Source of the DNA: Eutreptiella sp. 'Long Island Sound 2002'
Taxonomy: Eukaryota; Protista; Euglenida
NCBI GenBank assembly: GCA_964036045.1
Contig: OZ038379.1
Coordinates: forward strand, 6,510,001-6,574,000
Direction of reading: 5' to 3'
Length of the DNA: 64,000 nt
The notes below the pieces were generated by a model. The model ran no database searches. It was not told the DNA's origin and saw only the letters and a list, made by a program, of their open reading frames with translations. The first letter of the stretch is position 1. Every line of letters begins with the position of its first letter. The position numbers and the translations under genes were made by a program. Positions 19,346 through 64,000 of the stretch are shown here, piece by piece.

Positions 19346-19846
19346 TTGGGGGGGGGGGGGGGATGAGGGGCACCCACGGTGTGGACAAAAGGCAGGCAGG
19401 CGCCGCCCCCCAGACACACACTCGTAGGTTATCCGACCCACCAAATGGGAGCTTGGCCCCGTCCATAGTCCTTGTGCGACGGCGCTCCGGCGCTCCGCAG
19501 CACCCCCGGGGCCTCATCCCCTGGTGGGGTCTGCACACACGTGAGCAGTAACAGCGTGCTGCTGGCCTCAATTGGGTCAGAAACTGAGCGCCGGATGACC
19601 GTGCCCACTGCCTACGGGTTGCTGTTGGGATGCAGGATGCACTTGCACAACTCCGTTGTTTCTTCCCAATTCGCACTATGCCACTCGGTGCACTATTACG
19701 CAGATTCCTCAGAGTCACTGCATAAATACTACTCCAAGAATATCAGCAGGTCCCGCAACTGATATCCCACAGCGGTCTGGCAGACCCTGCAGCACAACTG
19801 AAGGGTCAGGTACAAAAAAAGGTACAGGGGCCATTGAAATGCATAC

Positions 19847-21070
19847 CAGCTCGTGCAAAATGGTCGCGGCAGCCACCGTCCAACCGGTGGCTGGGTCACA
19901 AAGTTTGAATGCAACACCAATCAACACCCCGTCCACGAAATTGTGCATTCCATCTCCGAGGAGCACGGACCATGCAACCCCATTCATTGGCCAGCACGGC
20001 TTCGGTTGGGGGGCGAAGCCAGATGAGGGGACCTCAACATCGCCTTCAGGGGTGCCTTCAGTCTGGCCGTCGGGGCGGATGACCTTGCTCTGGATGACAT
20101 GGTCGTGGTCGCCATGAACGTGATGCCCCTGGGGGAAGAGCACAGCCATCAACCATTCGATGAGGGCTGGAATGAAAAAGCCCAACAGCACCGAGGACCC
20201 CCACCACGCCGACGCCACCGACTCGTCCGGGTGCGCAGCCGATATGTTTAAGTAGGACTCCGGATAAATCAAGAAGAACACGGTTGCAAGCACTGCACCG
20301 GAGGCAAAGGCGTCCATGTATTTGAAAAGGCGGAACCGTATCATTGCCACACCGACCCCCGGAACAAGGAGCGCCAACCCAGTGAGGGTCGCCAAGCACA
20401 CGACACTCGACGCCAGTATGGCCAAGCCCGTGTTCTTGGGCGCAGCTGCCTCGCCACTCGCGGGTTCCGTGGCCTCCGGCTTGGCATCCTGGTCCTCGGG
20501 GTCTCTTAAATAGTGGTTGCGGAGCCCAAACTCCGTAGGGATGTATTGGGCGAAGATCACAAACGGCTGTTTGTGATCGTGATCGTGATCATGATCATGA
20601 TGATCGTCGGCGCTTGCGGCTTGGTACTTGGCGCTGGTGGAAAACAGAACCTGGAAGGTGCTAATGCTCGCCTTGCTGTTGAACTCCAACTCATACAGCT
20701 TACCCACACCGAGGGGCAAGGCCGAACCTGCTGACACATGTGTTGCGTTTCCCTCCCAGGTCTCCTCCGCCTCATGTTCCACCTCGTGGATGGCCGCACT
20801 GGTCGCGTTCTTCGCAGGCATGATGAGCAGCTTCATTGCCGAATCTGCATACTTCCCGCCCACCTTCTCCGCAATCCAAGTGTATTGCTCATCCGTATGC
20901 ACGTTGAATGCCCCCGCCCATTCCCATTTTGTCCCGTGGTCGTCATGACCATGATTATCATGGCCATGATCATGCCCGTCGTGGCCCTCTTCGCAAAGGC
21001 ACGAAGGGAGTAGCAACCACGTGATGAAAAGACAAACCAAACATCGGGAGTGCAGGCCAGTGTAGGACAT
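19847..21070 (-). CDS. ZIP/SLC39 (LIV-1-like) Zn/divalent metal transporter, exon 1
   Basis: Signal-peptide-like N-terminus, His-rich loops, TM4 motif GDGMHNFVDG, TM5 start ATILHEL, donor CTG|GTATGC (19846). Spliced product is 531 aa; intron is 2081 bp. Confidence 0.9.
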
Positions 21071-21949
21071 CTTGTGTTCTGAACAAGAGTATCCTACAAA
21101 CAAAAGAACATTGTATGCACTCGATGTGTGTTTTGCACATTGCAGCAGTAGCAAGTCTTGAGGAAATATGGGTTCGAATGCAAGGCAACCACTGAGCACC
21201 CGTGCACAAGGTTTCGTGGTCAAGGCAGCGGTGGTTGGATTTCACCGTGGTCCTTCAGCTTGCCTTCCAATGTTCAGGCTGCTACTGGTAAGAGGCATGA
21301 CATCAGGTTTTGGAATGACTGGGCAGTAGAGATGAGAGTCTTTGACCAAACCTCATGGGTGGCACCTGCTATGGTCAGCGACCCGCCCCCCACAGCAAAC
21401 TCCGCTCACAGGTCATTCCGCGGAAACGCTGCAACGAACGAACGAACTGGGCTGCAGGTGCCGCAGGTGCTGCAACACCAACATCTTAGACACCCAAAGC
21501 TGAAAAAAGGTCTCTGGAGAATGTAGTCACCGCTGTGAAGACTACACATCTAACGGTGTCGTGGGGTTTGTGCACTGCCCATGGAATGAGTCCCGGTGCT
21601 GTCGTGAGTGTATGGCACAGTGGTAGTGGAGGCCACATACCTGTTTGCCCTTGGATCCTCAGTTGCCCAAAACATTTGTACATGTGAGCATGCACATACA
21701 TATGACATTGACAAGATTGCAATGCATATGATATGATTTTTGGCTGATCACAGGGCACAATGTAGTCTTAGGCCGGTAGACCAAGCAGGTGCACACCCCA
21801 ACTTCCTCCCACAGTATACAGTTGAGCAGTGGTGGTCGCCTGCTGCTCCAGAAAAGGGAACATTCTTCTGGGGAGAGGCATTGACTGGTGTGACGGCGCC
21901 ACCAACACCAAGCGGATTACCCTCCTGCCCTTCCGCCGTCGTGAGTCCC

Positions 21950-23155: not shown

Positions 23156-23608
23156 TCATGGTGTATCCCCAAGGCCCAGCCGCTGCAGGTACCTCCGCCG
23201 TTCTGCCTTCGACTTGAGACGGTCCCACTCCCAGAACGGCACAGACACAACACGATACCCAAAGCACTGCAGCTGCCGTCGCTTCAACAACGTCGCCCCC
23301 GAAGCCGCAAAGCCCCCGGGGCCCTGCACAAAATGTGATGGGCCGTCCACCTCCACAACAACGCGGCGCTTCTGCAGCAGAATGTCCGCACTGTACCCCC
23401 CAGCGTCAGACAACACGACCTCTTCAACAAACTTCACGTTCATCTGCCGGAGCACCGCGGCCACAGACCTCTGCAGCCGCGAAGGAGCCGCACGTTGTGA
23501 GGCCGCTGTGAAATGCCTGGCACACTTCTCTACGAACGAGCTCTTGCACCGAAGCACTTTGCTGCTGAGCGGAAGGTGCTGCTGTTGCAATTGCACGTGC
23601 AGAAAGAC
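23156..23608 (-). CDS. OPR-like repeat/RAP protein, exon 2: RAP domain
   Basis: Acceptor ttcAG (23610-23609), phase 0. YSADILL...VVVEVDGPSHF...TLLKRRQLQCFGYRVVSVPFWEW is the RAP (PD-(D/E)xK-like) signature. Confidence 0.9.
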   Translation of the reverse strand, partial: VFLHVQLQQQHLPLSSKVLRCKSSFVEKCARHFTAASQRAAPSRLQRSVAAVLRQMNVKFVEEVVLSDAGGYSADILLQKRRVVVEVDGPSHFVQGPGGFAASGATLLKRRQLQCFGYRVVSVPFWEWDRLKSKAERRRYLQRLGLGDTP

Positions 23609-24343
23609 CTGAACAGAAATGTGAGTGAGTGAGGCCAAATGTTTGGGTGCACAGATGACTTCTTGTGACAAACAGAACTGTACGACCCACAGCGATTGGC
23701 AGTCAATCCGTTGAGAGGGACGGCTGCAGTGGGGGGGTCGAGGTCACAGAACCCTCCGGGCATTGGAGGGGGGACCGGTTTGGGACTGGGACGACTGGGA
23801 CGACAACTGCGATCGCCAATTTCAACAAATCCGTTTTTTTTTTAGGGCTGTGTGTAGCATCCCTTCCCCATGAACGCTGCTGATCTGACATCCTCAGCCA
23901 CGAACGAGACAGACCAGAAGTATGTGCACCACTTTCTGACACAAGACGCTCTGTTCATAAATTCATGCAAAAACAACCCTCAAATCTGCAGGTGCAGATG
24001 GTTTTCATTGCCAAGTGTTGCCTCATGAAACGTCGCACACAACTACCCCTGACCTGCGGCTGAAACCGCACCCCCAAATCACGACTTTGCATGACACTCT
24101 TTGCACGTCACAGGCCTTAGCTTCACCCTACGAGTGAACGGCACGTCGAACCTCAAAAGCCCCCCTAACAACGACTTCTCCATGGCGCCCAAAGTTGACG
24201 ACAATCTGCCTTGTGCTGGGGTCCTTGCCGTTAAGTACTCACTCACCGCACCACATTTGCAGCAAGCTCCCCCACAGTGATTTGTTGCTCAAAGAGTAGA
24301 AGAGGAGTGGAATAGGATCGCATACAAAGCCATCAAAACATAC

Positions 24344-26962
24344 CTGATGCAGTTGACACAGTTGAAGCGGACACATGGTCTTCTCAGTGATGTCAGCAAA
24401 TGCCCGGTTAAGAAGGCCGGTAATGGTGGTGTCATGCGAGCTGTCAAGTACAGCAAAGCCCCACACAGTGTTGGTAACGTTCTGTGCATGGAATGTGGTC
24501 AAGAAGTCTTCATGCAACATCCGGTGTGCCATGGCAGCCATCAGGTCATCATTACGCACACCGAATGTTGCAAAACCCCACACAGTGTTGGCAATCTCCT
24601 GTGCCTTGAATGTGGTCAAGAAGTCTTCATGCAACATCCGGTGTGCCATGGCCGCCATCAGGTCCCCATTATGTACACCCAGTGTGGCGAAGCCCCACAC
24701 AGTGTTGGCAATCTCCTGTGCCTTGAATGTGGTCAAGAAGTCTTCATGCAACATCCGGCGTGCGATAGCCACCATCAGGTCCTCATTATGCACACCCAGT
24801 GTGGCGAAGCCCCACACAGTGTTGGCAACGCTCTGTGCCTCGAATGTGGTCAAGAAGTCTTTATGCAACATCCGGTGTGCCATGGCAGCCATCAGGTCAT
24901 CATTACGCACACCCAGTGTGGCGAAGCCCCACACAGTGTTGGCAGTCTCCTGTGCCTTGAATGTGGTCAAGAAGTCTTCATGCAACATCCGGTGTGCCAT
25001 GGCAGCCATCAGGTCCCCATTACGTACACCCAATGTTGCAAAACTCCACACAGTGTTGGCAACGTTCTGTGCATTGAATGTGGTCAAGAAGTCTTCATGC
25101 AACATCCGGTGTGCCATGGCCGCCATCAGGTCATCATTACGCACACCGAATGTTGCAAAACCCCACACAGTGTTGGCAATCCCCTGTGCATTGAATGTGG
25201 TCAAGAAGTCTTCATGCAACATCCGGCGTGCCATGGCCGCCATCAGGTCCCCATTATGTTCACCCAGTGTGGCAAAACCCCACACAGTGTTGGCAACGTT
25301 CTGTGCCTTGAATGTGGTCAAGAAGTCTTCATGCAACATCCGGTGTGCCATAGCCGCCATCAGGTCATCATTATGTACACCCAGTGTGGCGAAGCCCCAC
25401 ACAGTGTTGGCAATGCCCTGTGCAATGAATGTGGTCAAGAAGTCTTCATGTAACATCCGGTGTGCCATGGCAGCCATCAGGTCATCATTACGCACACCTA
25501 ATGTTGCAAAACCCCACACAGTGTTGGCAATCCCCTGTGCATTGAATGTGGTCAAGAAGTCTTCATGCAACATCCGGCGTGCCATGGCAGCCATCAGGTC
25601 ATCATTACGCATACCCAATGTGGCAAAGCCCCACACAGTGTTGGCAATCTCCTGTGCCTTGAATGTGGTCAAGAAGTCTTCATGCAACATCCGGTGTGCC
25701 ATGGCAGCCATCAGGTCATCATTATGTACACCCAGTGTGGCGAAGCCCCACACAGTGTTGGCAGTCTCCTGTGCCTTGAATGTGGTCAAGAAGTCTTCAT
25801 GCAACATCCGGCGTGCGATAGCCACCATCAGGTCCTCATTATGTACACCCAGTGTGGCAAAGCCCCACACAGTGTTGGCAATCTCCTGTGCCTTGAATGT
25901 GGTCAAGAAGTCTTCATGCAACATCCGGCGTGCGATAGCCACCATCACGTCCTCATTATGTTCACCCAGTGTGGCAAAGCCCCACACAGTGTTGGCAATC
26001 TCCTGTGCCTTGAATGTGGTCAAGAAGTCTTCATGCAACATCCGGCGTGCCATGGCAGCCATCAGGTCCCCATTACGTACACCCAACGTGGCGAAGCCCC
26101 ATATAGTGTTGGCCACACTTTGGGCTGAGAGCTGTTCAATCATACAGGCATCCGTCACACACGTTGCAAGCGCCTCCATCAGCTCCGGGTGGGGCATGCC
26201 TACCTTGGCCAAAGCCCAGCAGGTCATGGAGATCCCTTGGCCACTGAGGTTCGGCACAAGGTCACGCCGAAGCATCTGTTGTCCGATTCCATGCACCAGG
26301 GCCTTGTCGCGAAGTCGCATCTGACTGAATGCATGCAGTAGCTGCACTGCCTGACGCCCGTTAAGAGCCCGCAGCAATTCCGCGTCGAGGATGCGACGCC
26401 GCAAGGCACGCACTGTTTCATTTCTGGGCTTCGTAATGAGCCTCCGGACTTCACTGCTACGCGCACAAAGAGATGCCACTTGCCGAGTTATCGCCACCAG
26501 GTCAGTGGGCGTGTATCTGGCAGCCCCCCTCTCCACCTCCGCACACACCAGCGCAAACTCTTCGTCCGCATCACCGGACTGCACCTTCCGTCGCAGCGGT
26601 CTCGGGAATCGTTCTGCCTTTGTTGGTGTGTGGCCACGGCTCTGATCCCGCCGCTGTCCTCCAGGTCCCTTTCGGCTGCTGAACATGCGGCGCACCACGA
26701 TCGAGCCCCGGGACCCCAGGCCACGGAAGATGGTACGAGACATGGAAGTGGTACCTGCAGCGCCTGCAGTGCGCGCTACAGCGGCACCGGTGCACAAGCG
26801 GCCAGACACGCCTCCCCTCGGGCATTTGTAGTCCAGTCGGTGCCCGGCAAGGGACACCGTCCCCTTGGCAGCGTGACTGAGGGATGTGATGCCCCTTGTG
26901 CTGAGCGCGGCCCATGAGGACGTTGCCTGTGCCCTCTGCAACCAACGCAGTATCGCATGCAT
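24344..26962 (-). CDS. OPR-like repeat/RAP protein, exon 1: transit peptide plus 39-aa helical repeat array
   Basis: ATG at 26962, preceded by a pyrimidine-rich tract and CAG. R/S/A-rich, acid-poor N-terminus with RRMFSS. 14 near-identical 39-aa units plus degenerate flanking units. Donor CAG|GTATGT (24343). Spliced length is 1023 aa. Confidence 0.9.
24494..26131 (-). repeat. Coding tandem repeat, 14 x 117 bp, no indels
   Basis: Unit 1 starts at 26131 and unit 15 at 24493 (1638 = 14 x 117). Consensus FKAQEIANTVWGFATLGVRNDDLMAAMAHRMLHEDFLTT. Confidence 0.95.
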
Positions 26963-54596: not shown

Positions 54597-57500
54597 CCGC
54601 CTGCATGCCCTGTACACCCGGTGCATGCCCTGCACACCTGGTGCATGCCCTGCACACCCGGTGCATGCCCTGTACACCCGGTGCATGCCCTGTACACCCG
54701 CTGCATGCCCTGCACACCCGGTGCATGCCCTGCACACCCGGTGCATGCCCTGCACACCCGCTGCATGCCCTGCACACCCGGTGCATGCCCTGTACACCCG
54801 CTGCATGCCCTGTACACCCGGTGCATGCCCTGTACACCCGGTGCATGCCCTGCACACCCGGTGCATGCCCTGTACACCCGCTGCATGCCCTGCACACCCG
54901 GTGCATGCCCTGCACACCCGGTGCATGCCCTGTACACCCGGTGCATGCCCTGCACACCCGCTGCATGCCCTGTACACCCGGTGCATGCCCTGTACACCCG
55001 GTGCATGCCCTGCACACCCGCTGCATGCCCTGCACACCCGCTGCATGCCCTGTACACCCGGTGCATGCCCTGCACACCCGCTGCATGCCCTGTACACCCG
55101 GTGCATGCCCTGTACACCCGGTGCATGCCCTGCACACCCGGTGCATGCCCTGCACACCCGCTGCATGCCCTGCACACCCGGTGCATGCCCTGTACACCCG
55201 GTGCATGCCCTGTACACCCGCTGCATGCCCTGTACACCCGGTGCATGCCCTGTACACCCGCTGCATGCCCTGTACACCCGGTGCATGCCCTGTACACCCG
55301 GTGCATGCCCTGTACACCCGGTGCATGCCCTGCACACCCGGTGCATGCCCTGTACACCCGGTGCATGCCCTGCACACCCGGTGCATGCCCTGCACACCCC
55401 CTGCATGCCCTGCACACCCGGTGCATGCCCTGCACACCCGGTGCATGCCCTGCACACCCGGTGCATGCCCTGCACACCCGCTGCATGCCCTGCACACCCG
55501 CTGCATGCCCTGCACACCCGGTGCATGCCCTGTACACCCGCTGCATGCCCTGTACACCCGGTGCATGCCCTGTACACCCGCTGCATGCCCTGTACACCCG
55601 GTGCATGCCCTGTACACCCGGTGCATGCCCTGCACACCCGCTGCATGCCCTGCACACCCCCTGCATGCCCTGCACACCCGGTGCATGCCCTGCACACCCG
55701 CTGCCTGCCCTGTACACCCGGTGCATGCCCTGTGCACCCCCTGCATGCCCTGCACACCCGGTGCATGCCCTGCACAGCCGGTGCATGCCCTGTACACCCG
55801 GTGCATGCCCTGCACACCCGCTGCATGCCCTGCACACCCGGTGCATGCCCTGCACACCCGGTGCATGCCCTGTACACCCGGTGCATGCCCTGCACACCCG
55901 GTGCATGCCCTGCACAGCCGGTGCATGCCCTGTACACCCGGTGCATGCCCTGCACACCCGCTGCATGCCCTGCACACCCGGTGCATGCCCTGCACACCCG
56001 GTGCATGCCCTGTACACCCGGTGCATGCCCTGCACACCCGGTGCATGCCCTGCACACCCGCTGCATGCCCTGTACACCCGGTGCATGCCCTGTACACCCG
56101 GTGCATGCCCTGCACACCCGGTGCATGCCCTGCACACCCGGTGCATGCCCTGTACACCCGGTGCATGCCCTGCACACCCGGTGCATGCCCTGTACACCCG
56201 GTGCATGCCCTGCACAGCCGGTGCATGCCCTGTACACCCGGTGCATGCCCTGCACACCCGCTGCATGCCCTGCACACCCGGTGCATGCCCTGCACACCCG
56301 GTGCATGCCCTGTACACCCGGTGCATGCCCTGCACACCCGGTGCATGCCCTGCACACCCGCTGCATGCCCTGTACACCCGGTGCATGCCCTGTACACCCG
56401 GTGCATGCCCTGCACACCCGGTGCATGCCCTGCACACCCGGTGCATGCCCTGTACACCCGGTGCATGCCCTGCACACCCGGTGCATGCCCTGTACACCCG
56501 GTGCATGCCCTGCACACCCGGTGCATGCTCTGGACACCTGGTGCATGCCCTGTGCACCCGGTGCATGCCCTGTACACCCGGTGCATGCCCTGTACACCCG
56601 CTGCATGCCCTGTACGCCCGCTGCATGCCCTGTACACCCGGTGCATGCCCTGTACACCCGGTGCATGCCCTGCACACCCGCTGCATGCCCTGCACACCCG
56701 GTGCATGCCCTGTACACCCGGTGCATGCCCTGCACACCCGCTGCATGCCCTGTACACCCGCTGCATGCCCTGTACACCCGGTGCATGCCCTGTACACCCG
56801 GTGCATGCCCTGCACACCCGGTGCATGCCCTGTACACCCGCTGCATGCCCTGCACACCCGCTGCATGCCCTGTACACCCGCTGCATGCCCTGTACACCCG
56901 GTGCATGCCCTGTACACCCGGTGCATGCCCTGCACACCCGCTGCATGCCCTGTACACCCGGTGCATGCCCTGTACACCCGGTGCATGCCCTGTACACCCG
57001 GTGCATGCCCTGTACACCCGCTGCATGCCCTGTACACCCGGTGCATGCCCTGTACACCCGGTGCATGCCCTGTACACCCGGTGCATGCCCTGTACACCCG
57101 CTGCATGCCCTGTACACCCGGTGCATGCCCTGTACACCCGGTGCATGCCCTGCACACCCCCTGCATGCCCTGCACACCCGGTGCATGCCCTGCACACCCG
57201 CTGCATGCCCTGTACACCCGGTGCATGCCCATGTACACCCGGTGCATGCCCTGCACACCCGGTGCATGCCCTGCACAGCCGGTGCATGCCCTGTACACCC
57301 GGTGCATGCCCTGCACACCCGCTGCATGCCCTGCACACCCGGTGCATGCCCTGCACACCCGGTGCATGCCCTGTACACCCGGTGCATGCCCTGCACACCC
57401 GGTGCATGCCCTGCACACCCGCTGCATGCCCTGCACACCCGGTGCATGCCCTGTACACCCGGTGCATGCCCTGCACACCCGGTGCATGCCCTGCACAGCC

Positions 57501-60500
57501 GGTGCATGCCCTGTACACCCGGTGCATGCCCTGCACACCCGCTGCATGCCCTGCACACCCGGTGCATGCCCTGCACACCCGGTGCATGCCCTGTACACCC
57601 GGTGCATGCCCTGCACACCCGCTGCATGCCCTGCACACCCGCTGCATGCCCTGTACACCCGTTGCATGCCCTGTACACCCGGTGCATGCCCTGCACACCC
57701 GCTGCATGCCCTGTACACCCGCTGCATGCCCTGCACACCCGGTGCATGCCCTGTACACCCGGTGCATGCCCTGCACACCCGGTGCATGCCCTGTACACCC
57801 GCTGCATGCCCTGTACACCCGGTGCATGCCCTGCACACCCGCTGCATGCCCTGTACACCCGGTGCATGCCCTGCACACCCGGTGCATGCCCTGCACACCC
57901 GGTGCATGCCCTGCACACCCCCTGCATGCCCTGCACACCCGGTGCATGCCCTGGACACCTGGTGCATGCCCTGTGCACCCGGTGCATGCCCTGTACACCC
58001 GGTGCATGCCCTGTACACCCGCTGCATGCCCTGTACGCCCGCTGCATGCCCTGCACACCCGGTGCATGCCCTGTACACCCGGTGCATGCCCTGCACACCC
58101 GCTGCATGCCCTGTACACCCGCTGCATGCCCTGTACACCCGGTGCATGCCCTGTACACCCGGTGCATGCCCTGCACACCCGGTGCATGCCCTGTACACCC
58201 GGTGCATGCCCTGCACACCCGCTGCATGCCCTGTACACCCGCTGCATGCCCTGTACACCCGGTGCATGCCCATATACACCCGGTGCATGCCCTGCACACC
58301 CGCTGCATGCCCTGTACACCCGGTGCATGCCCTGTACACCCGGTGCATGCCCTGTACACCCCGTGCATGCCCTGCACACCCGCTGCATGCCCTGTACACC
58401 CGGTGCATGCCCTGTACACCCGGTGCATGCCCTGTACACCCGGTGCATGCCCTGTACACCCGCTGCATGCCCTGTACACCCGGTGCATGCCCTGTACACC
58501 CGGTGCCTGCCCTGCACACCCGGTGCATGCCCTGTACACCCGGTGCATGCCCTGCACACCCGCTGCATGCCCTGTACACCCGGTGCATGCCCTGCACACC
58601 CGGTGCATGCCCTGCACACCCGCTGCGTGCCCTGTACACCCGGTGCATGCCCTGCACACCCGGTGCATGCCCTGTGCACCCGGTGCATGCCCTGCACACC
58701 CGCTGCATGCCCTGTACACCCGGTGCATGCCCTGCACACCCGGTGCATGCCCTGTACACCCGGTGCATGCCCTGCACACCCGGTGCATGCCCTGTACACC
58801 CGTTGCATGCCCTGCACACCCGGTGCATGCCCTGTACACCCGGTGCATGCCCTGCACACCCGGTGCATGCCCTGTACACCCGGTGCATGCCCTGCACACC
58901 CGGTGCATGCCCTGTACACCCGGTGCATGCCCTGTACACCCGGTGCATGCCCTGCACACCCGGTGCATGCCCTGCACACCCGCTGCATGCCCTGTACACC
59001 CGGTGCATGCCCTGTACACCCGGTGCATGCCCTGCACACCCGCTGCATGCCCTGTACACCCGGTGCATGCCCTGCACACCCGGTGCATGCCCTGCACACC
59101 CGGTGCATGCCCTGCACACCCGGTGCATGCCCTGTACACCCGCTGCATGCCCTGGACACCTGGTGCATGCCCTGTGCACCCGGTGCATGCCCTGTACACC
59201 CGGTGCATGCCCTGCACACCCGCTGCATGCCCTGCACACCCGCTGCATGCCCTGTACACCCGGTGCATGCCCTGTACACCCGGTGCATGCCCTGCACACC
59301 CGGTGCATGCCCTGTACACCCGGTGCATGCCCTGCACAGCCGGTGCATGCCCTGTACACCCGCTGCATGCCCTGTACACCCGGTGCATGCCCTGTACACC
59401 CGGTGCATGCCCTGCACACCCGGTGCATGCCCTGCACACCCGGTGCATGCCCTGTACACCCGCTGCATGCCCTGTACACCCGGTGCATGCCCTGTACACC
59501 CGTTGCATGCCCTGTGCACCCGGTGCATGCCCTGTACACCCGGTGCATGCCCTGTACACCCGCTGCATGCCCTGTACACCCGGTGCATGCCCTGCACACC
59601 CGGTGCATGCCCTGTACACCCGGTGCATGCCCTGCACACCCGGTGCATGCCCTGTACACCCGGTGCATGCCCTGCACACCCGGTGCATGCCCTGCACACC
59701 CCCTGCATGCCCTGCACACCCGGTGCATGCCCTGCACACCCGGTGCATGCCCTGCACACCCGGTGCATGCCCTGCACACCCGCTGCATGCCCTGCACACC
59801 CGGTGCATGCCCTGCACACCCGGTGCATGCCCTGTACACCCGGTGCATGCCCTGTACACCCGGTGCATGCCCTGTACACCCGCTGCATGCCCTGTACACC
59901 CGGTGCATGCCCTGTACACCCGGTGCATGCCCTGCACACCCGCTGCATGCCCTGCACACCCCCTGCATGCCCTGCACACCCGGTGCATGCCCTGCACACC
60001 CGGTGCAGGCCCTGCACACCCGGTGCATGCCCTGCACACCCCCTGCATGCCCTGCACACCCGGTGCATGCCCTGCACACCCGCTGCATGCCCTGTACACC
60101 CGGTGCATGCCCTGTACACCCGGTGCATGCCCTGCACACCCGGTGCATGCCCTGCACACCCGGTGCATGCCCTGTACACCCGCTGCATGCCCTGTACGCC
60201 CGCTGCATGCCCTGCACACCCGGTGCATGCCCTGTACACCCGGTGCATGCCCTGCACACCCGCTGCATGCCCTGTACACCCGCTGCATGCCCTGTACACC
60301 CGGTGCATGCCCATGTACACCCGGTGCATGCCCTGCACACCCGCTGCATGCCCTGTACACCCGGTGCATGCCCTGTACACCCGGCGCATGCCCTGTACAC
60401 CCCGTGCATGCCCTGTACACCCGCTGCATGCCCTGTACACCCGGTGCATGCCCTGTACACCCGGTGCATGCCCTGTACACCCGGTGCATGCCCTGTACAC

Positions 60501-63500
60501 CCGCTGCATGCCCTGTACACCCGGTGCATGCCCTGTACACCCGGTGCCTGCCCTGCACACCCGGTGCATGCCCTGTACACCCGGTGCATGCCCTGCACAC
60601 CCGCTGCATGCCCTGTACACCCGGTGCATGCCCTGCACACCCGGTGCATGCCCTGCACACCCGCTGCGTGCCCTGTACACCCGGTGCATGCCCTGCACAC
60701 CCGGTGCATGCCCTGTGCACCCGGTGCATGCCCTGCACACCCGCTGCATGCCCTGTACACCCGCTGCATGCCCTGCACACCCGGTGCATGCCCTGTACAC
60801 CCGGTGCATGCCCTGCACACCCGGTGCATGCCCTGTACACCCGGTGCATGCCCTGCACACCCGGTGCATGCCCTGTACACCCGGTGCATGCCCTGCACAC
60901 CCGGTGCATGCCCTGTACACCCGGTGCATGCCCTGCACACCCGGTGCATGCCCTGTACACCCGGTGCATGCCCTGCACACCCGGTGCATGCCCTGCACAC
61001 CCGCTGCATGCCCTGTACACCCGGTGCATGCCCTGCACACCCGCTGCATGCCCTGTACACCCGGTGCATGCCCTGCACACCCGGTGCATGCCCTGCACAC
61101 CCGGTGCATGCCCTGCACACCCGGTGCATGCCCTGTACACCCGCTGCATGCCCTGGACACCTGGTGCATGCCCTGTGCACCCGGTGCATGCCCTGTACAC
61201 CCGGTGCATGCCCTGCACACCCGCTGCATGCCCTGCACACCCGCTGCATGCCCTGTACACCCGGTGCATGCCCTGTACACCCGGTGCATGCCCTGCACAG
61301 CCGGTGCATGCCCTGTACACCCGGTGCATGCCCTGCACAGCCGGTGCATGCCCTGTACACCCGCTGCATGCCCTGTACACCCGGTGCATGCCCTGTACAC
61401 CCGGTGCATGCCCTGCACACCCGGTGCATGCCCTGCACACCCGGTGCATGCCCTGTACACCCGCTGCATGCCCTGTACACCCGGTGCATGCCCTGTACAC
61501 CCGTTGCATGCCCTGTGCACCCGGTGCATGCCCTGTACACCCGGTGCATGCCCTGTACACCCGCTGCATGCCCTGTACACCCGGTGCATGCCCTGCACAC
61601 CCGGTGCATGCCCTGTACACCCGGTGCATGCCCTGCACACCCGGTGCATGCCCTGTACACCCGGTGCATGCCCTGCACACCCGGTGCATGCCCTGCACAC
61701 CCCCTGCATGCCCTGCACACCCGGTGCATGCCCTGCACACCCGGTGCATGCCCTGCACACCCGGTGCATGCCCTGCACACCCGCTGCATGCCCTGCACAC
61801 CCGGTGCATGCCCTGCACACCCGGTGCATGCCCTGTACACCCGGTGCATGCCCTGTACACCCGGTGCATGCCCTGTACACCCGCTGCATGCCCTGTACAC
61901 CCGGTGCATGCCCTGTACACCCGGTGCATGCCCTGCACACCCGCTGCATGCCCTGCACACCCCCTGCATGCCCTGCACACCCGGTGCATGCCCTGCACAC
62001 CCGGTGCAGGCCCTGCACACCCGGTGCATGCCCTGCACACCCCCTGCATGCCCTGCACACCCGGTGCATGCCCTGCACACCCGCTGCATGCCCTGTACAC
62101 CCGGTGCATGCCCTGTACACCCGGTGCATGCCCTGCACACCCGGTGCATGCCCTGCACACCCGGTGCATGCCCTGTACACCCGGTGCATGCCCTGCACAC
62201 CCGCTGCATGCCCTGCACACCCGGTGCATGCCCTGCACACCCGGTGCATGCCCTGTACACCCGGTGCATGCCCTGCACACCCGGTGCATGCCCTGCACAC
62301 CCGCTGCATGCCCTGTACACCCGGTGCATGCCCTGTACACCCGGTGCATGCCCTGCACACTTGCTGCATGCCCTGTACACCCGCTGCATGCCCTGCACCG
62401 CCGGTGCATGCCCTGTACACCCGGTGCATGCCCTGTACACCCGCTGCATGCCCTGCACACCCGCTGCATGCCCTGTACACCCGGTGCATGCCCTGCACAC
62501 CCGCTGCATGCCCTGTACACCCGGTGCATGCCCTGCACACCCGGTGCATGCCCTGTACACCCGCTGCATGCCCTGTACACCCGCTGCATGTCCTGCACAC
62601 CCGGTGCATGCCCTGTACACCCGGTGCATGCCCTGTACACCCGGTGCATGCCCTGTACACCCGGTGCATGCCCTGTACACCCGGTGCATGCCCTGTACAC
62701 CCGGTGCATGCCCTGCACACCCGCTGCATGCCCTGTACACCCGGTGCATGCCCTGTACACCCGGTGCATGCCCTGCACACCCGCTGCATGCCCTGCACAC
62801 CCGGTGCATGCCCTGTACACCCGGTGCATGCCCTGTACACCCGCTGCATGCCCTGTACACCCGGTGCATGCCCTGTACACCCGGTGCATGCCCTGCACAC
62901 CCGGTGCATGCCCTGCACACCCGGTGCATGCCCTGTACACCCGGTGCATGCCCTGCACACCCGCTGCATGCCCTGTACACCCGCTGCATGCCCTGTACAC
63001 CCGGTGCATGCCCTGTACACCCGGTGCATGCCCTGCACACCCGCTGCATGCCCTGTACACCCGGTGCATGCCCTGTACACCCGGTGCATGCCCTGTACAC
63101 CCGGTGCATGCCCTGTACACCCGCTGCATGCCCTGTACACCCGGTGCATGCCCTGTACACCCGGTGCATGCCCTGTACACCCGGTGCATGCCCTGTACAC
63201 CCGCTGCATGCCCTGTACACCCGGTGCATGCCCTGTACACCCGGTGCATGCCCTGCACACCCGGTGCATGCCCTGTACACCCGGTGCATGCCCTGCACAC
63301 CCGCTGCATGCCCTGTACACCCGGTGCATGCCCTGTACACCCGGTGCATGCCCTGCACACCCGCTGCATGCCCTGTACACCCGGTGCATGCCCTGCACAC
63401 CCGCTGCATGCCCTGTACACCCGGTGCATGCCCTGTACACCCGGTGCATGCCCTGTACACCCGCTGCATGCCCTGCACACCCGGTGCATGCCCTGTACAC

Positions 63501-64000
63501 CCGGTGCATGCCCTGTACACCCGGTGCATGCCCTGTACACCCGGTGCATGCCCTGCACACCCGGTGCATGCCCTGTACACCCGGTGCATGCCCTGTACAC
63601 CCGGTGCATGCCCTGCAACCCGGTGCATGCCCTGTACACCCGGTGCATGCCCTGCACACCCGCTGCATGCCCTGTACACCCGGTGCATGCCCTGCACACC
63701 CGGTGCATGCCCTGTACACCCGGTGCATGCCCTGTACACCCGGTGCATGCCCTGCACACCCGGTGCATGCCCTGCACACCCGCTGCATGCCCTGTACACC
63801 CGGTGCATGCCCTGTACACCCGGTGCATGCCCTGCACACCCGCTGCATGCCCTGTACACCCGGTGCATGCCCTGTACACCCGGTGCATGCCCTGCACACC
63901 CGGTGCATGCCCTGTACACCCGCTGCATGCCCTGTACACCCGCTGCATGCCCTGCACACCCGGTGCATGCCCTGTACACCCGGTGCATGCCCTGTACACC
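54597..64000 (-). repeat. Same 20-bp satellite, >=470 units, runs off the window
   Basis: (CATGCCCTG[T/C]ACACCCG[G/C]TG)n with rare variants and 1-bp indel units at ~57231, 58272, 60313 and 63617. Confidence 0.98.

Follow-up and report, generated by a model that had tools for sequence, protein, structure and literature searches.

A probable organellar RNA-binding protein of the euglenid Eutreptiella with a near-identical HPR/OPR-type repeat array and a predicted RAP domain

Both the human FASTK family and essential mitochondrial factors of apicomplexans are among the HPR and OPR repeat proteins. The rule by which these proteins recognise RNA is stated to be unknown in reviews up to December 2025 (PMC12691811). 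OPR repeats are degenerate, and single substitutions retarget the NCL proteins (PMC7729196, PMC8635915). OPR repeats are distinguished from HPR repeats by the motif PPPEW, and the HPR protein PbHPR1 bound RNA, not DNA (both PMC6212722). The solenoid of the mitoribosomal protein mL115 binds the single-stranded 3' end of a ribosomal RNA in its inner groove (PMC8660880). A 2025 review terms 39-residue tricopeptide repeats "missing" (PMC12691811), although OPR repeats are elsewhere defined as 38 to 40 residues long. Here, we analysed a gene of this kind in Eutreptiella sp. 'Long Island Sound 2002', found on the minus strand of a 64,000-nucleotide stretch of DNA (GenBank assembly GCA_964036045.1, contig OZ038379.1, positions 6,510,001 to 6,574,000; hereafter the window). 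All coordinates refer to the window. The gene likely encodes an organellar RNA-binding HPR/OPR-RAP protein whose repeat array has been expanded and is under selection. An earlier, sequence-only reading of the same DNA by a model had proposed a TALE-like array fused to a nuclease-like RAP domain, and its background on OPR degeneracy and NCL retargeting agrees with the papers cited above.

Tandem Repeats Finder detected a period of 117 bp at 24453–26113, with 14.2 copies, 90% matches and 0% indels. Together with the unit coordinates, the codon table and the alignment, this placed a core array of 14 units of 117 bp (39 amino acids) at 24494–26131 on the minus strand. It is closed by a degenerate 15th unit (24377–24493, minus strand), identified from the register listing and alignment, in which the first helix of the unit, helix A, is kept (FHAQNVTNTVWGFAVL) and the remainder has diverged. 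This cap aligns with the capping repeat of complete homologues. On the N-terminal side, older degenerate helical repeats (26132–26569, minus strand) form about four helix pairs of the solenoid, as seen from the 39-residue register and from modelled helical hairpins; two 39-residue units are recognisable there.

The consensus of the core units is FKAQxIANTVWGFATLGVxNDDLMAAMAHRMLHEDFLTT, with E, G, N or S at position 5 and K, N, I, E or S at position 2. From the N to the C terminus, residues 5 and 6 read SV, EI, EI, ET, EI, GI, GI, NV, GI, NV, ET, SV, EI and EI, followed by NV in the 15th unit. Amino-acid variation was concentrated at positions 2, 5, 6, 18, 19, 21, 25, 27 and 29. Elsewhere, positions 1, 10, 12, 23 and 34 were changed in one unit only, and position 16 in two. 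The sequence-only reading had counted 14 exact units plus a degenerate 15th, had given the same order of residues 5 and 6, and had confined the variation to a few columns. Tandem Repeats Finder and the protein register bore out the count, the order matched exactly, and the variation does fall mainly in the nine positions listed, with few isolated changes elsewhere.

Protein identity between units was ~78–86%. At the DNA level, unit pairs were 79–98% identical (mean 90%), and 35 of the 117 nucleotide columns were variable. No two units were identical, the core units being 2–24 nucleotides apart. Silent differences segregated at codons 12, 13, 14, 16, 18, 25 and 26, and the synonymous divergence (pS) between units was 0.16–0.19. 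The earlier description of the units as "homogenised even at silent sites" was therefore overstated, given this divergence and the number of variable columns. All four combinations were present in 119 of 190 pairs of informative sites, and the units are therefore a recombination mosaic. This agrees with the reshuffling of variants between units and with the expansion and recombination of the array that had been read from the letters, since both tandem duplication and a mosaic are supported. The array may have grown by tandem duplication, unequal crossing-over and gene conversion.

Pfam profiles matched exon 1 with DUF1601 (59.6 bits, cutoff 25) and FAST_1 (43.3 bits, cutoff 27.4). Among proteins of solved structure, the sequence matches were Trypanosoma brucei RESC6 (E = 4e-24), Chlamydomonas mL115 (E = 3e-12) and Polytomella mL123. 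An AlphaFold2 model of the repeat region, calculated from the single sequence, showed a regular solenoid of alternating helices A and B at moderate confidence (predicted local distance difference test, pLDDT, 63.5). In the upstream degenerate repeats, all modelled as helical hairpins, pLDDT was 77–86. Within each unit, the model places helix A at positions 3–16, a loop, helix B at positions 22–32 and a four-residue turn. The best fold match of the repeat model was RESC6, and others were RESC8, mL115, Toxoplasma mitoribosomal HPR proteins and PPR10. We found 315 homologues, many of them with RAP domains; the best named ones were Euglena gracilis transcripts.

The unit consensus does not contain PPPEW, the mark of OPR repeats in the strict sense. 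Nor does it have the 37-residue period of strict HPR repeats, as it measures exactly 39 residues (117 bp, 0% indels). Relatives with the same helix-A core have periods of 35–39 residues. We place the protein in the known HPR/OPR-FASTK-RAP class of organellar RNA binders; neither strict definition fits it. Pfam, the structure matches, and the AlphaFold2 models with their Foldseek results agree on an OPR/HPR-type array joined to a nuclease-like RAP domain, as first read. The Pfam search gave no TAL profile match, and TALEs were absent among the fold matches. "TALE-like" is an analogy only, with neither a sequence nor a fold relation behind it.

The ratio of nonsynonymous to synonymous divergence (pN/pS) between units differed strongly along the repeat. 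It was 0.07–0.10 in helix A when positions 2, 5 and 6 were left out, 0.34 in helix B and 0.67 in the loop between the helices. For positions 2, 5 and 6 pooled, it reached 1.8, or 5.0 without the outlying first unit, values that are based on two or three codons. Positions 2 and 5 diverge more quickly between units than silent sites do, and the remainder of helix A is under strong constraint.

Position 6, which is I, V or T in the array, falls on the hydrophobic face of helix A in a helical wheel, together with A7, V10, W11 and A14. It shows complete linkage to position 5 (N and S occur with V, G with I, and E with I or T), and across the family it is a low-entropy I/L/V site. For these three reasons, we read position 6 as a hitch-hiking residue of the buried core and not as half of a "di-residue". 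The hypervariable di-residue at positions 5 and 6 claimed earlier went too far: position 6 is buried and conservative, and the second variable site is position 2, located just ahead of helix A.

By the same helical-wheel reasoning, position 5 lies on the opposite, polar face of helix A, aligned with Q4, N8, T9 and the small residue 12. In PPR repeats, the residue chiefly responsible for specificity occupies the equivalent place in helix A. Because position 5 combines the focus of diversifying selection, a conserved polar face, a restricted alphabet and this PPR-like place, we infer that it is, together with position 2, the candidate RNA reader. That positions 2 and 5 set the specificity is, in our judgement, an evenly balanced proposition; a strict code of one base per repeat is somewhat doubtful.

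Similar arrays were found in other sequences. In 16 of the best 120 protein homologues, a set collected through word sharing with the query, neighbouring repeats shared at least 70% identity, their periods being 35–39 residues. A profile of the 39-residue units missed full units of 37 and 38 residues, and it was replaced by anchoring on the Q..xN..W core. When 41 protein arrays were stacked on this helix-A core, an anchoring that necessarily holds positions 4, 8 and 11 constant, variation within helix A peaked at position 5 in 21 arrays and at position 2 in nine. With a profile of the window units, 3,759 cluster representatives were retrieved at E ≤0.001 among 1.84 billion proteins. The window itself holds no further gene of this kind.

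Metagenome contigs from JGI were scanned with the RAP exon, yielding 80 loci at 34–51% identity. A tandem array of 111, 114 or 117 bp, comprising as many as 20 copies that match at up to 95%, was present near the RAP match in 52 of them. Across 30 independent arrays with 37-residue units, given equal weight, position 5 had the highest pN (0.46, or 1.5 times the overall pS) and ranked top in nine arrays, and the helix-A positions besides 2 and 5 had pN of 0.00–0.17. In 312 units from 39 arrays, 96% of the position-5 residues were E, N, D, A or G, at about equal frequencies. Positions 2 and 5 were paired non-randomly in these units, K with E, N with D, G or N, and T with N or A. No alleles or orthologues suited to a comparison of unit order were found in the metagenome scan, the RAP-exon relatives being at most 51% identical. 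Such near-identical arrays are frequent in environmental protists and the architecture is known, so that the earlier label of a "novel system" was too strong.

Two of the JGI contigs, Ga0210243_100319 (L043:1-941) and Ga0210245_101103 (L051:4306-5841), carry the two most homogeneous arrays, made of 37-residue units with 94–97% identical DNA. Their arrays are cleaner than the one in the window: position 5 (G, N, D or E) is the most variable, then position 2 (T or K in L051), with few changes at positions 32–33 and 37. The closest relative fetched was a 699-kb contig (ENA ERZ25074135, ctg10090_45x_l, L001:6001-8600). It shares the 39-residue period and has only ~7 units, three consecutive ones being duplicated en bloc as a higher-order repeat of 117 amino acids. 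Outside eukaryotes, two proteins from a Holosporales bacterium metagenome-assembled genome (P0063 and P0110) have the same helix-A repeat core with a 35-residue period, joined to DUF559 instead of RAP. Among bacteria, including Atlas clusters from Pseudomonadota, there were clusters with DUF1601 and others resembling XopAD in structure. The bacterial occurrences may reflect exchange between endosymbionts and hosts.

The second exon encodes the RAP domain. Pfam RAP (PF08373) matched it with E = 9e-14 and 51.7 bits (cutoff 24.2) over profile positions 1–57 of 58, corresponding to ~23180–23356 on the minus strand. The conserved acidic/His motif lies at 23333–23386 on the same strand (GYSADIL ... 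VVEVDGPSH; D75, E86, D88, G89, P90 and H92 in exon-2 numbering). The residues shared by all, or by at least 90%, of the 55 sequences in an alignment are all kept, namely S43, E63, D75, E86, D88, G89, P90, H92 and G117. The intact motif D..EVDGPSH noted earlier is thus present. The AlphaFold2 model of exon 2, based on this alignment, had a pLDDT of 88.3. With Foldseek, it matched Toxoplasma mitoribosomal RAP proteins (E = 5e-6), the catalytic domain of I-Bth0305I, the FAST1-FAST2-RAP module of FASTKD4 (9gek) and Vsr. As modelled, the RAP domain has a Vsr-like PD-(D/E)xK alpha/beta fold. FASTKD5 cuts RNA in vitro (PMC12242768).

The resemblance of the RAP fold to the DNA enzymes I-Bth0305I and Vsr, and the bacterial relatives with DUF559, would suit a DNA-targeting and truly TALE-like nuclease. 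Its array would read double- or single-stranded DNA of the organelle or the nucleus, and the Vsr-like domain would cut it in homing or defence. We consider this very improbable, as the characterised family members all act on RNA (PbHPR1, FASTKD5, mL115 and RESC6) and as TALEs resemble the protein neither in sequence nor in fold. DNA as a possible target, which the sequence-only reading had kept beside RNA, is unlikely for the same reason, the characterised HPR protein having bound RNA and not DNA (PMC6212722).

The locus is a real and probably working minus-strand gene with two predicted exons. The repeat array sits within an open frame of 923 codons (27010–24239, minus strand), which stays open across 2.7 kb. 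Exon 1, the repeat open reading frame (ORF), spans 24344–26962 on the minus strand and ends with CAG|GT at 24344/24343. Its last part, at 24344–24376 on that strand, is a linker (...LQLCQLHQ) with a QLHQ motif conserved among homologues. The RAP ORF is separate, and the two are joined solely through a predicted intron of 735 bp (23609–24343, minus strand; GT...AG, phase 0). The acceptor AG at 23610–23609 is followed in phase by VFLHV.... Exon 2 (23156–23608, minus strand) is intact and encodes 150 amino acids before the stop codon at 23156. The spliced product aligned continuously to uninterrupted homologues across QLHQ|VFL (conserved QLHQ-[FV]F). In the closest relative, a 224-bp GT intron interrupts the identical codon and exon 2 is 57% identical. 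These two observations support the predicted splice. A 157-nucleotide piece of the RAP exon was present in an estuary metatranscriptome with one mismatch. On the plus strand, antisense to the array, we noted ORFs of 649 codons (24375–26324) and of 368 codons. As genes they were rejected, being a by-product of a stop-free repeat and lacking gene support.

The N-terminal extension comprises ~130 amino acids (26570–26962, minus strand), as judged from the translation beginning at the ATG chosen in the sequence-only reading (ORF residue 17). This start codon is putative, with additional in-frame Met codons at ORF residues 90 and 109. R, S, G, A and T abound in this region, acidic residues are few, and it resembles an organelle presequence; the RRMFSS reported earlier is present in the translation. 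Within it, an in-frame stretch of 153 nucleotides (26699–26851) had near-zero depth in run X1, whose contigs depart into other sequence at either border. In the estuary metatranscriptome, a related contig joins 26698 directly to 26852, with the gene-strand ends CT..TC. The stretch could be an indel allele, a difference between paralogues or an unconventional intron.

We propose that this nuclear gene encodes a helical-repeat RNA-binding protein that would be targeted to an organelle, the predicted targeting being compatible with either mitochondrion or plastid. About 19 helix-hairpin repeats would stack into a superhelical solenoid and, by homology with solved relatives, single-stranded organellar RNA would lie in the inner groove. 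Position 5, together with position 2, would set the base or short RNA element favoured by each repeat. The RAP domain would then cut the bound RNA, or hold an RNA end beside the bound site. Selection has held the scaffold constant and promoted substitutions at positions 2 and 5, a pattern as expected of a nuclear factor that tracks organellar targets. In a more specific form, the arrays would be modular RNA readers, taking one nucleotide per repeat via position 5 helped by position 2, with RAP cutting alongside the site. We offer this form only tentatively, and with it, equally tentatively, an alphabet of E, N, D, A and G, plus S in this lineage.

Several points weigh against the proposed mechanism. 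No read or contig across the whole array was found in four runs, the short contigs breaking inside it. In the same four runs, which consisted of DNA-like short-read contigs, no splice-spanning RNA read was found; the intron was evenly covered, and the runs containing this DNA are therefore DNA. The 5' end had no RNA support in the reads examined. Both the repeat model and the pN/pS peak also carry the limits given above, moderate confidence for the one and two or three codons for the other. The groove-facing orientation of position 5 is suggested by the helical wheel and by analogy with PPR position 5, and helix-B and loop positions vary too. Half of the core units (7 of 14) pair E5 with K2, which could be a structural salt bridge instead of a base reader. 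For mL115, the contacts with RNA are said to depend mainly on charge (PMC8660880), which speaks against a base-specific code. Finally, FASTKD4, with the same fold as the RAP domain here, is without nuclease activity (cited in PMC12242768).

An unspanned array in which short-read contigs break, and a splice seen in no RNA, would also be expected if an assembler had expanded the array or if the locus were a decaying duplicate drifting neutrally. We regard either as a very slim possibility. All 15 units are mutually different, and hence are not stacked identical copies. Both unique flanks and several unit junctions were matched exactly by contigs of two samples. The long open frame, the intact exon 2 and the metatranscriptome match to the RAP exon argue in the same direction, and the low pN/pS of the scaffold codons is not that of neutral drift.

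The charge-based contacts of mL115, the missing nuclease activity of FASTKD4 and the strong coupling of K2 with E5 would instead suit a structural RNA binder without a base code, such as a mitoribosomal or RESC-like clamp that holds RNA ends or proteins by charge and shape. Variation at positions 2 and 5 would then tune protein contacts or helix capping (K2-E5), and RAP would be a non-catalytic holder of RNA ends. Components of this type make up the closest relatives of solved structure (RESC6, mL115, and the Toxoplasma mitoribosomal RAP and HPR proteins). We nevertheless think this explanation unlikely. It is not evident why a scaffold would require 15 near-identical units that vary at a single exposed site within a set of five polar or small residues, and the single-site pattern recurs across dozens of independent arrays. 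Moreover, pN/pS above 1 at positions 2 and 5, beside neighbours at 0.07–0.10, points to diversifying selection on a ligand-reading site.

Neither the architecture nor the family is new, and the gene is an unusually clean variant, not a new system. Three of its features are not described in the literature searched: the near-identical state of the repeats, the 39-residue period, and a single-site hypervariability common to independent arrays. One stated obstacle to a recognition rule for HPR/OPR proteins is that the repeats are too degenerate to align, and near-identical arrays remove that obstacle. With the scaffold constant, the residues that differ between units are therefore the candidate specificity determinant. 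In the window and in the 30 independent metagenome arrays, this candidate is position 5, then position 2. The value of the locus is that of one of many natural arrays indicating position 5, with position 2 second, as the likely HPR/OPR specificity site. If a code exists, these proteins would supply a novel RNA-binding scaffold open to design, with a nuclease-like domain already attached. Should the arrays be modular readers, they would amount to a class of programmable, protein-guided RNA endonucleases, comparable in usefulness to designer PPR and PUF proteins. If there is no code, the focused diversifying selection still calls for an explanation.

Elsewhere in the window, eight ORFs were tested against Pfam, and the only other one with a match was a 502-codon ORF at 19715–21223 (minus strand) with a ZIP zinc-transporter domain (PF02535, E = 4e-16). 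From 54602 to 64000, a 20-bp satellite (consensus TGCATGCCCTGTACACCCGG) is repeated in ~470 copies with 93% identity and continues past the end of the window. Its guanine-cytosine (GC) content is ~67% and its GC skew ~-0.29, and three of its minus-strand frames run without a stop for more than 3,100 codons. A search of the window against Rfam gave no matches.

Of the known systems, the HPR/FASTK-RAP proteins (apicomplexan HPR-RAP; human FASTK and FASTKD1-5), whose role is in organellar RNA, share with this protein the tandem helix hairpins, linker and RAP domain, the FAST_1 and RAP matches, and the lack of PPPEW. The RAP fold is that of FASTKD4 (9gek) and of the Toxoplasma mitoribosomal RAP proteins. 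The period, however, is 39 residues here and 37 in HPR proteins. The protein also has 15 clear and ~19 total repeats, compared with a mean of ~6 per protein in a survey of 57 genomes and 2,433 HPR proteins (bioRxiv 10.64898/2026.01.22.701003). Its units are ~78–86% identical, whereas HPR repeats have been called too degenerate for a consensus (PMC12691811). The Chlamydomonas OPR-RAP/NCL proteins (NCC-like) likewise combine repeats of 38–40 residues with a C-terminal RAP domain. The NCL subfamily diversifies rapidly, and single repeat substitutions create new RNA targets (PMC8635915). In contrast to them, the euglenid protein is without PPPEW, and NCL proteins have 7–12 repeats.

The best match in both sequence and fold was T. 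brucei RESC6, of the RNA editing substrate-binding complex (8fn4 chain 6). It comes from the same supergroup, Euglenozoa, was deposited as a "RAP domain-containing protein", and shares the core F-[ND]-A-[QE]-x-[IV]. RESC6 has few, degenerate repeats and works inside a multiprotein editing complex, whereas here a long near-identical array accompanies an intact RAP motif. Chlamydomonas mL115 (7pkt chain O), matched in sequence at the E value given above, is also an RNA-holding solenoid. It differs in being a permanent component of the ribosome with degenerate repeats and mostly charge-based contacts.

TAL effectors are alike by analogy only, with near-identical tandem repeats, one or two variable residues per repeat and a recombination mosaic. 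They are not homologous: their repeats have 33–35 residues with a loop di-residue at positions 12–13, and they are secreted bacterial proteins that bind double-stranded DNA. The variable residue of the Eutreptiella repeats is in the first turn of helix A, as is PPR position 5, and not in a loop as in TALEs. Restorer-of-fertility-like PPR proteins of plants are organellar RNA-binding solenoids as well, with diversifying selection on their base-reading positions; they are built from 35-residue repeats and are without RAP.

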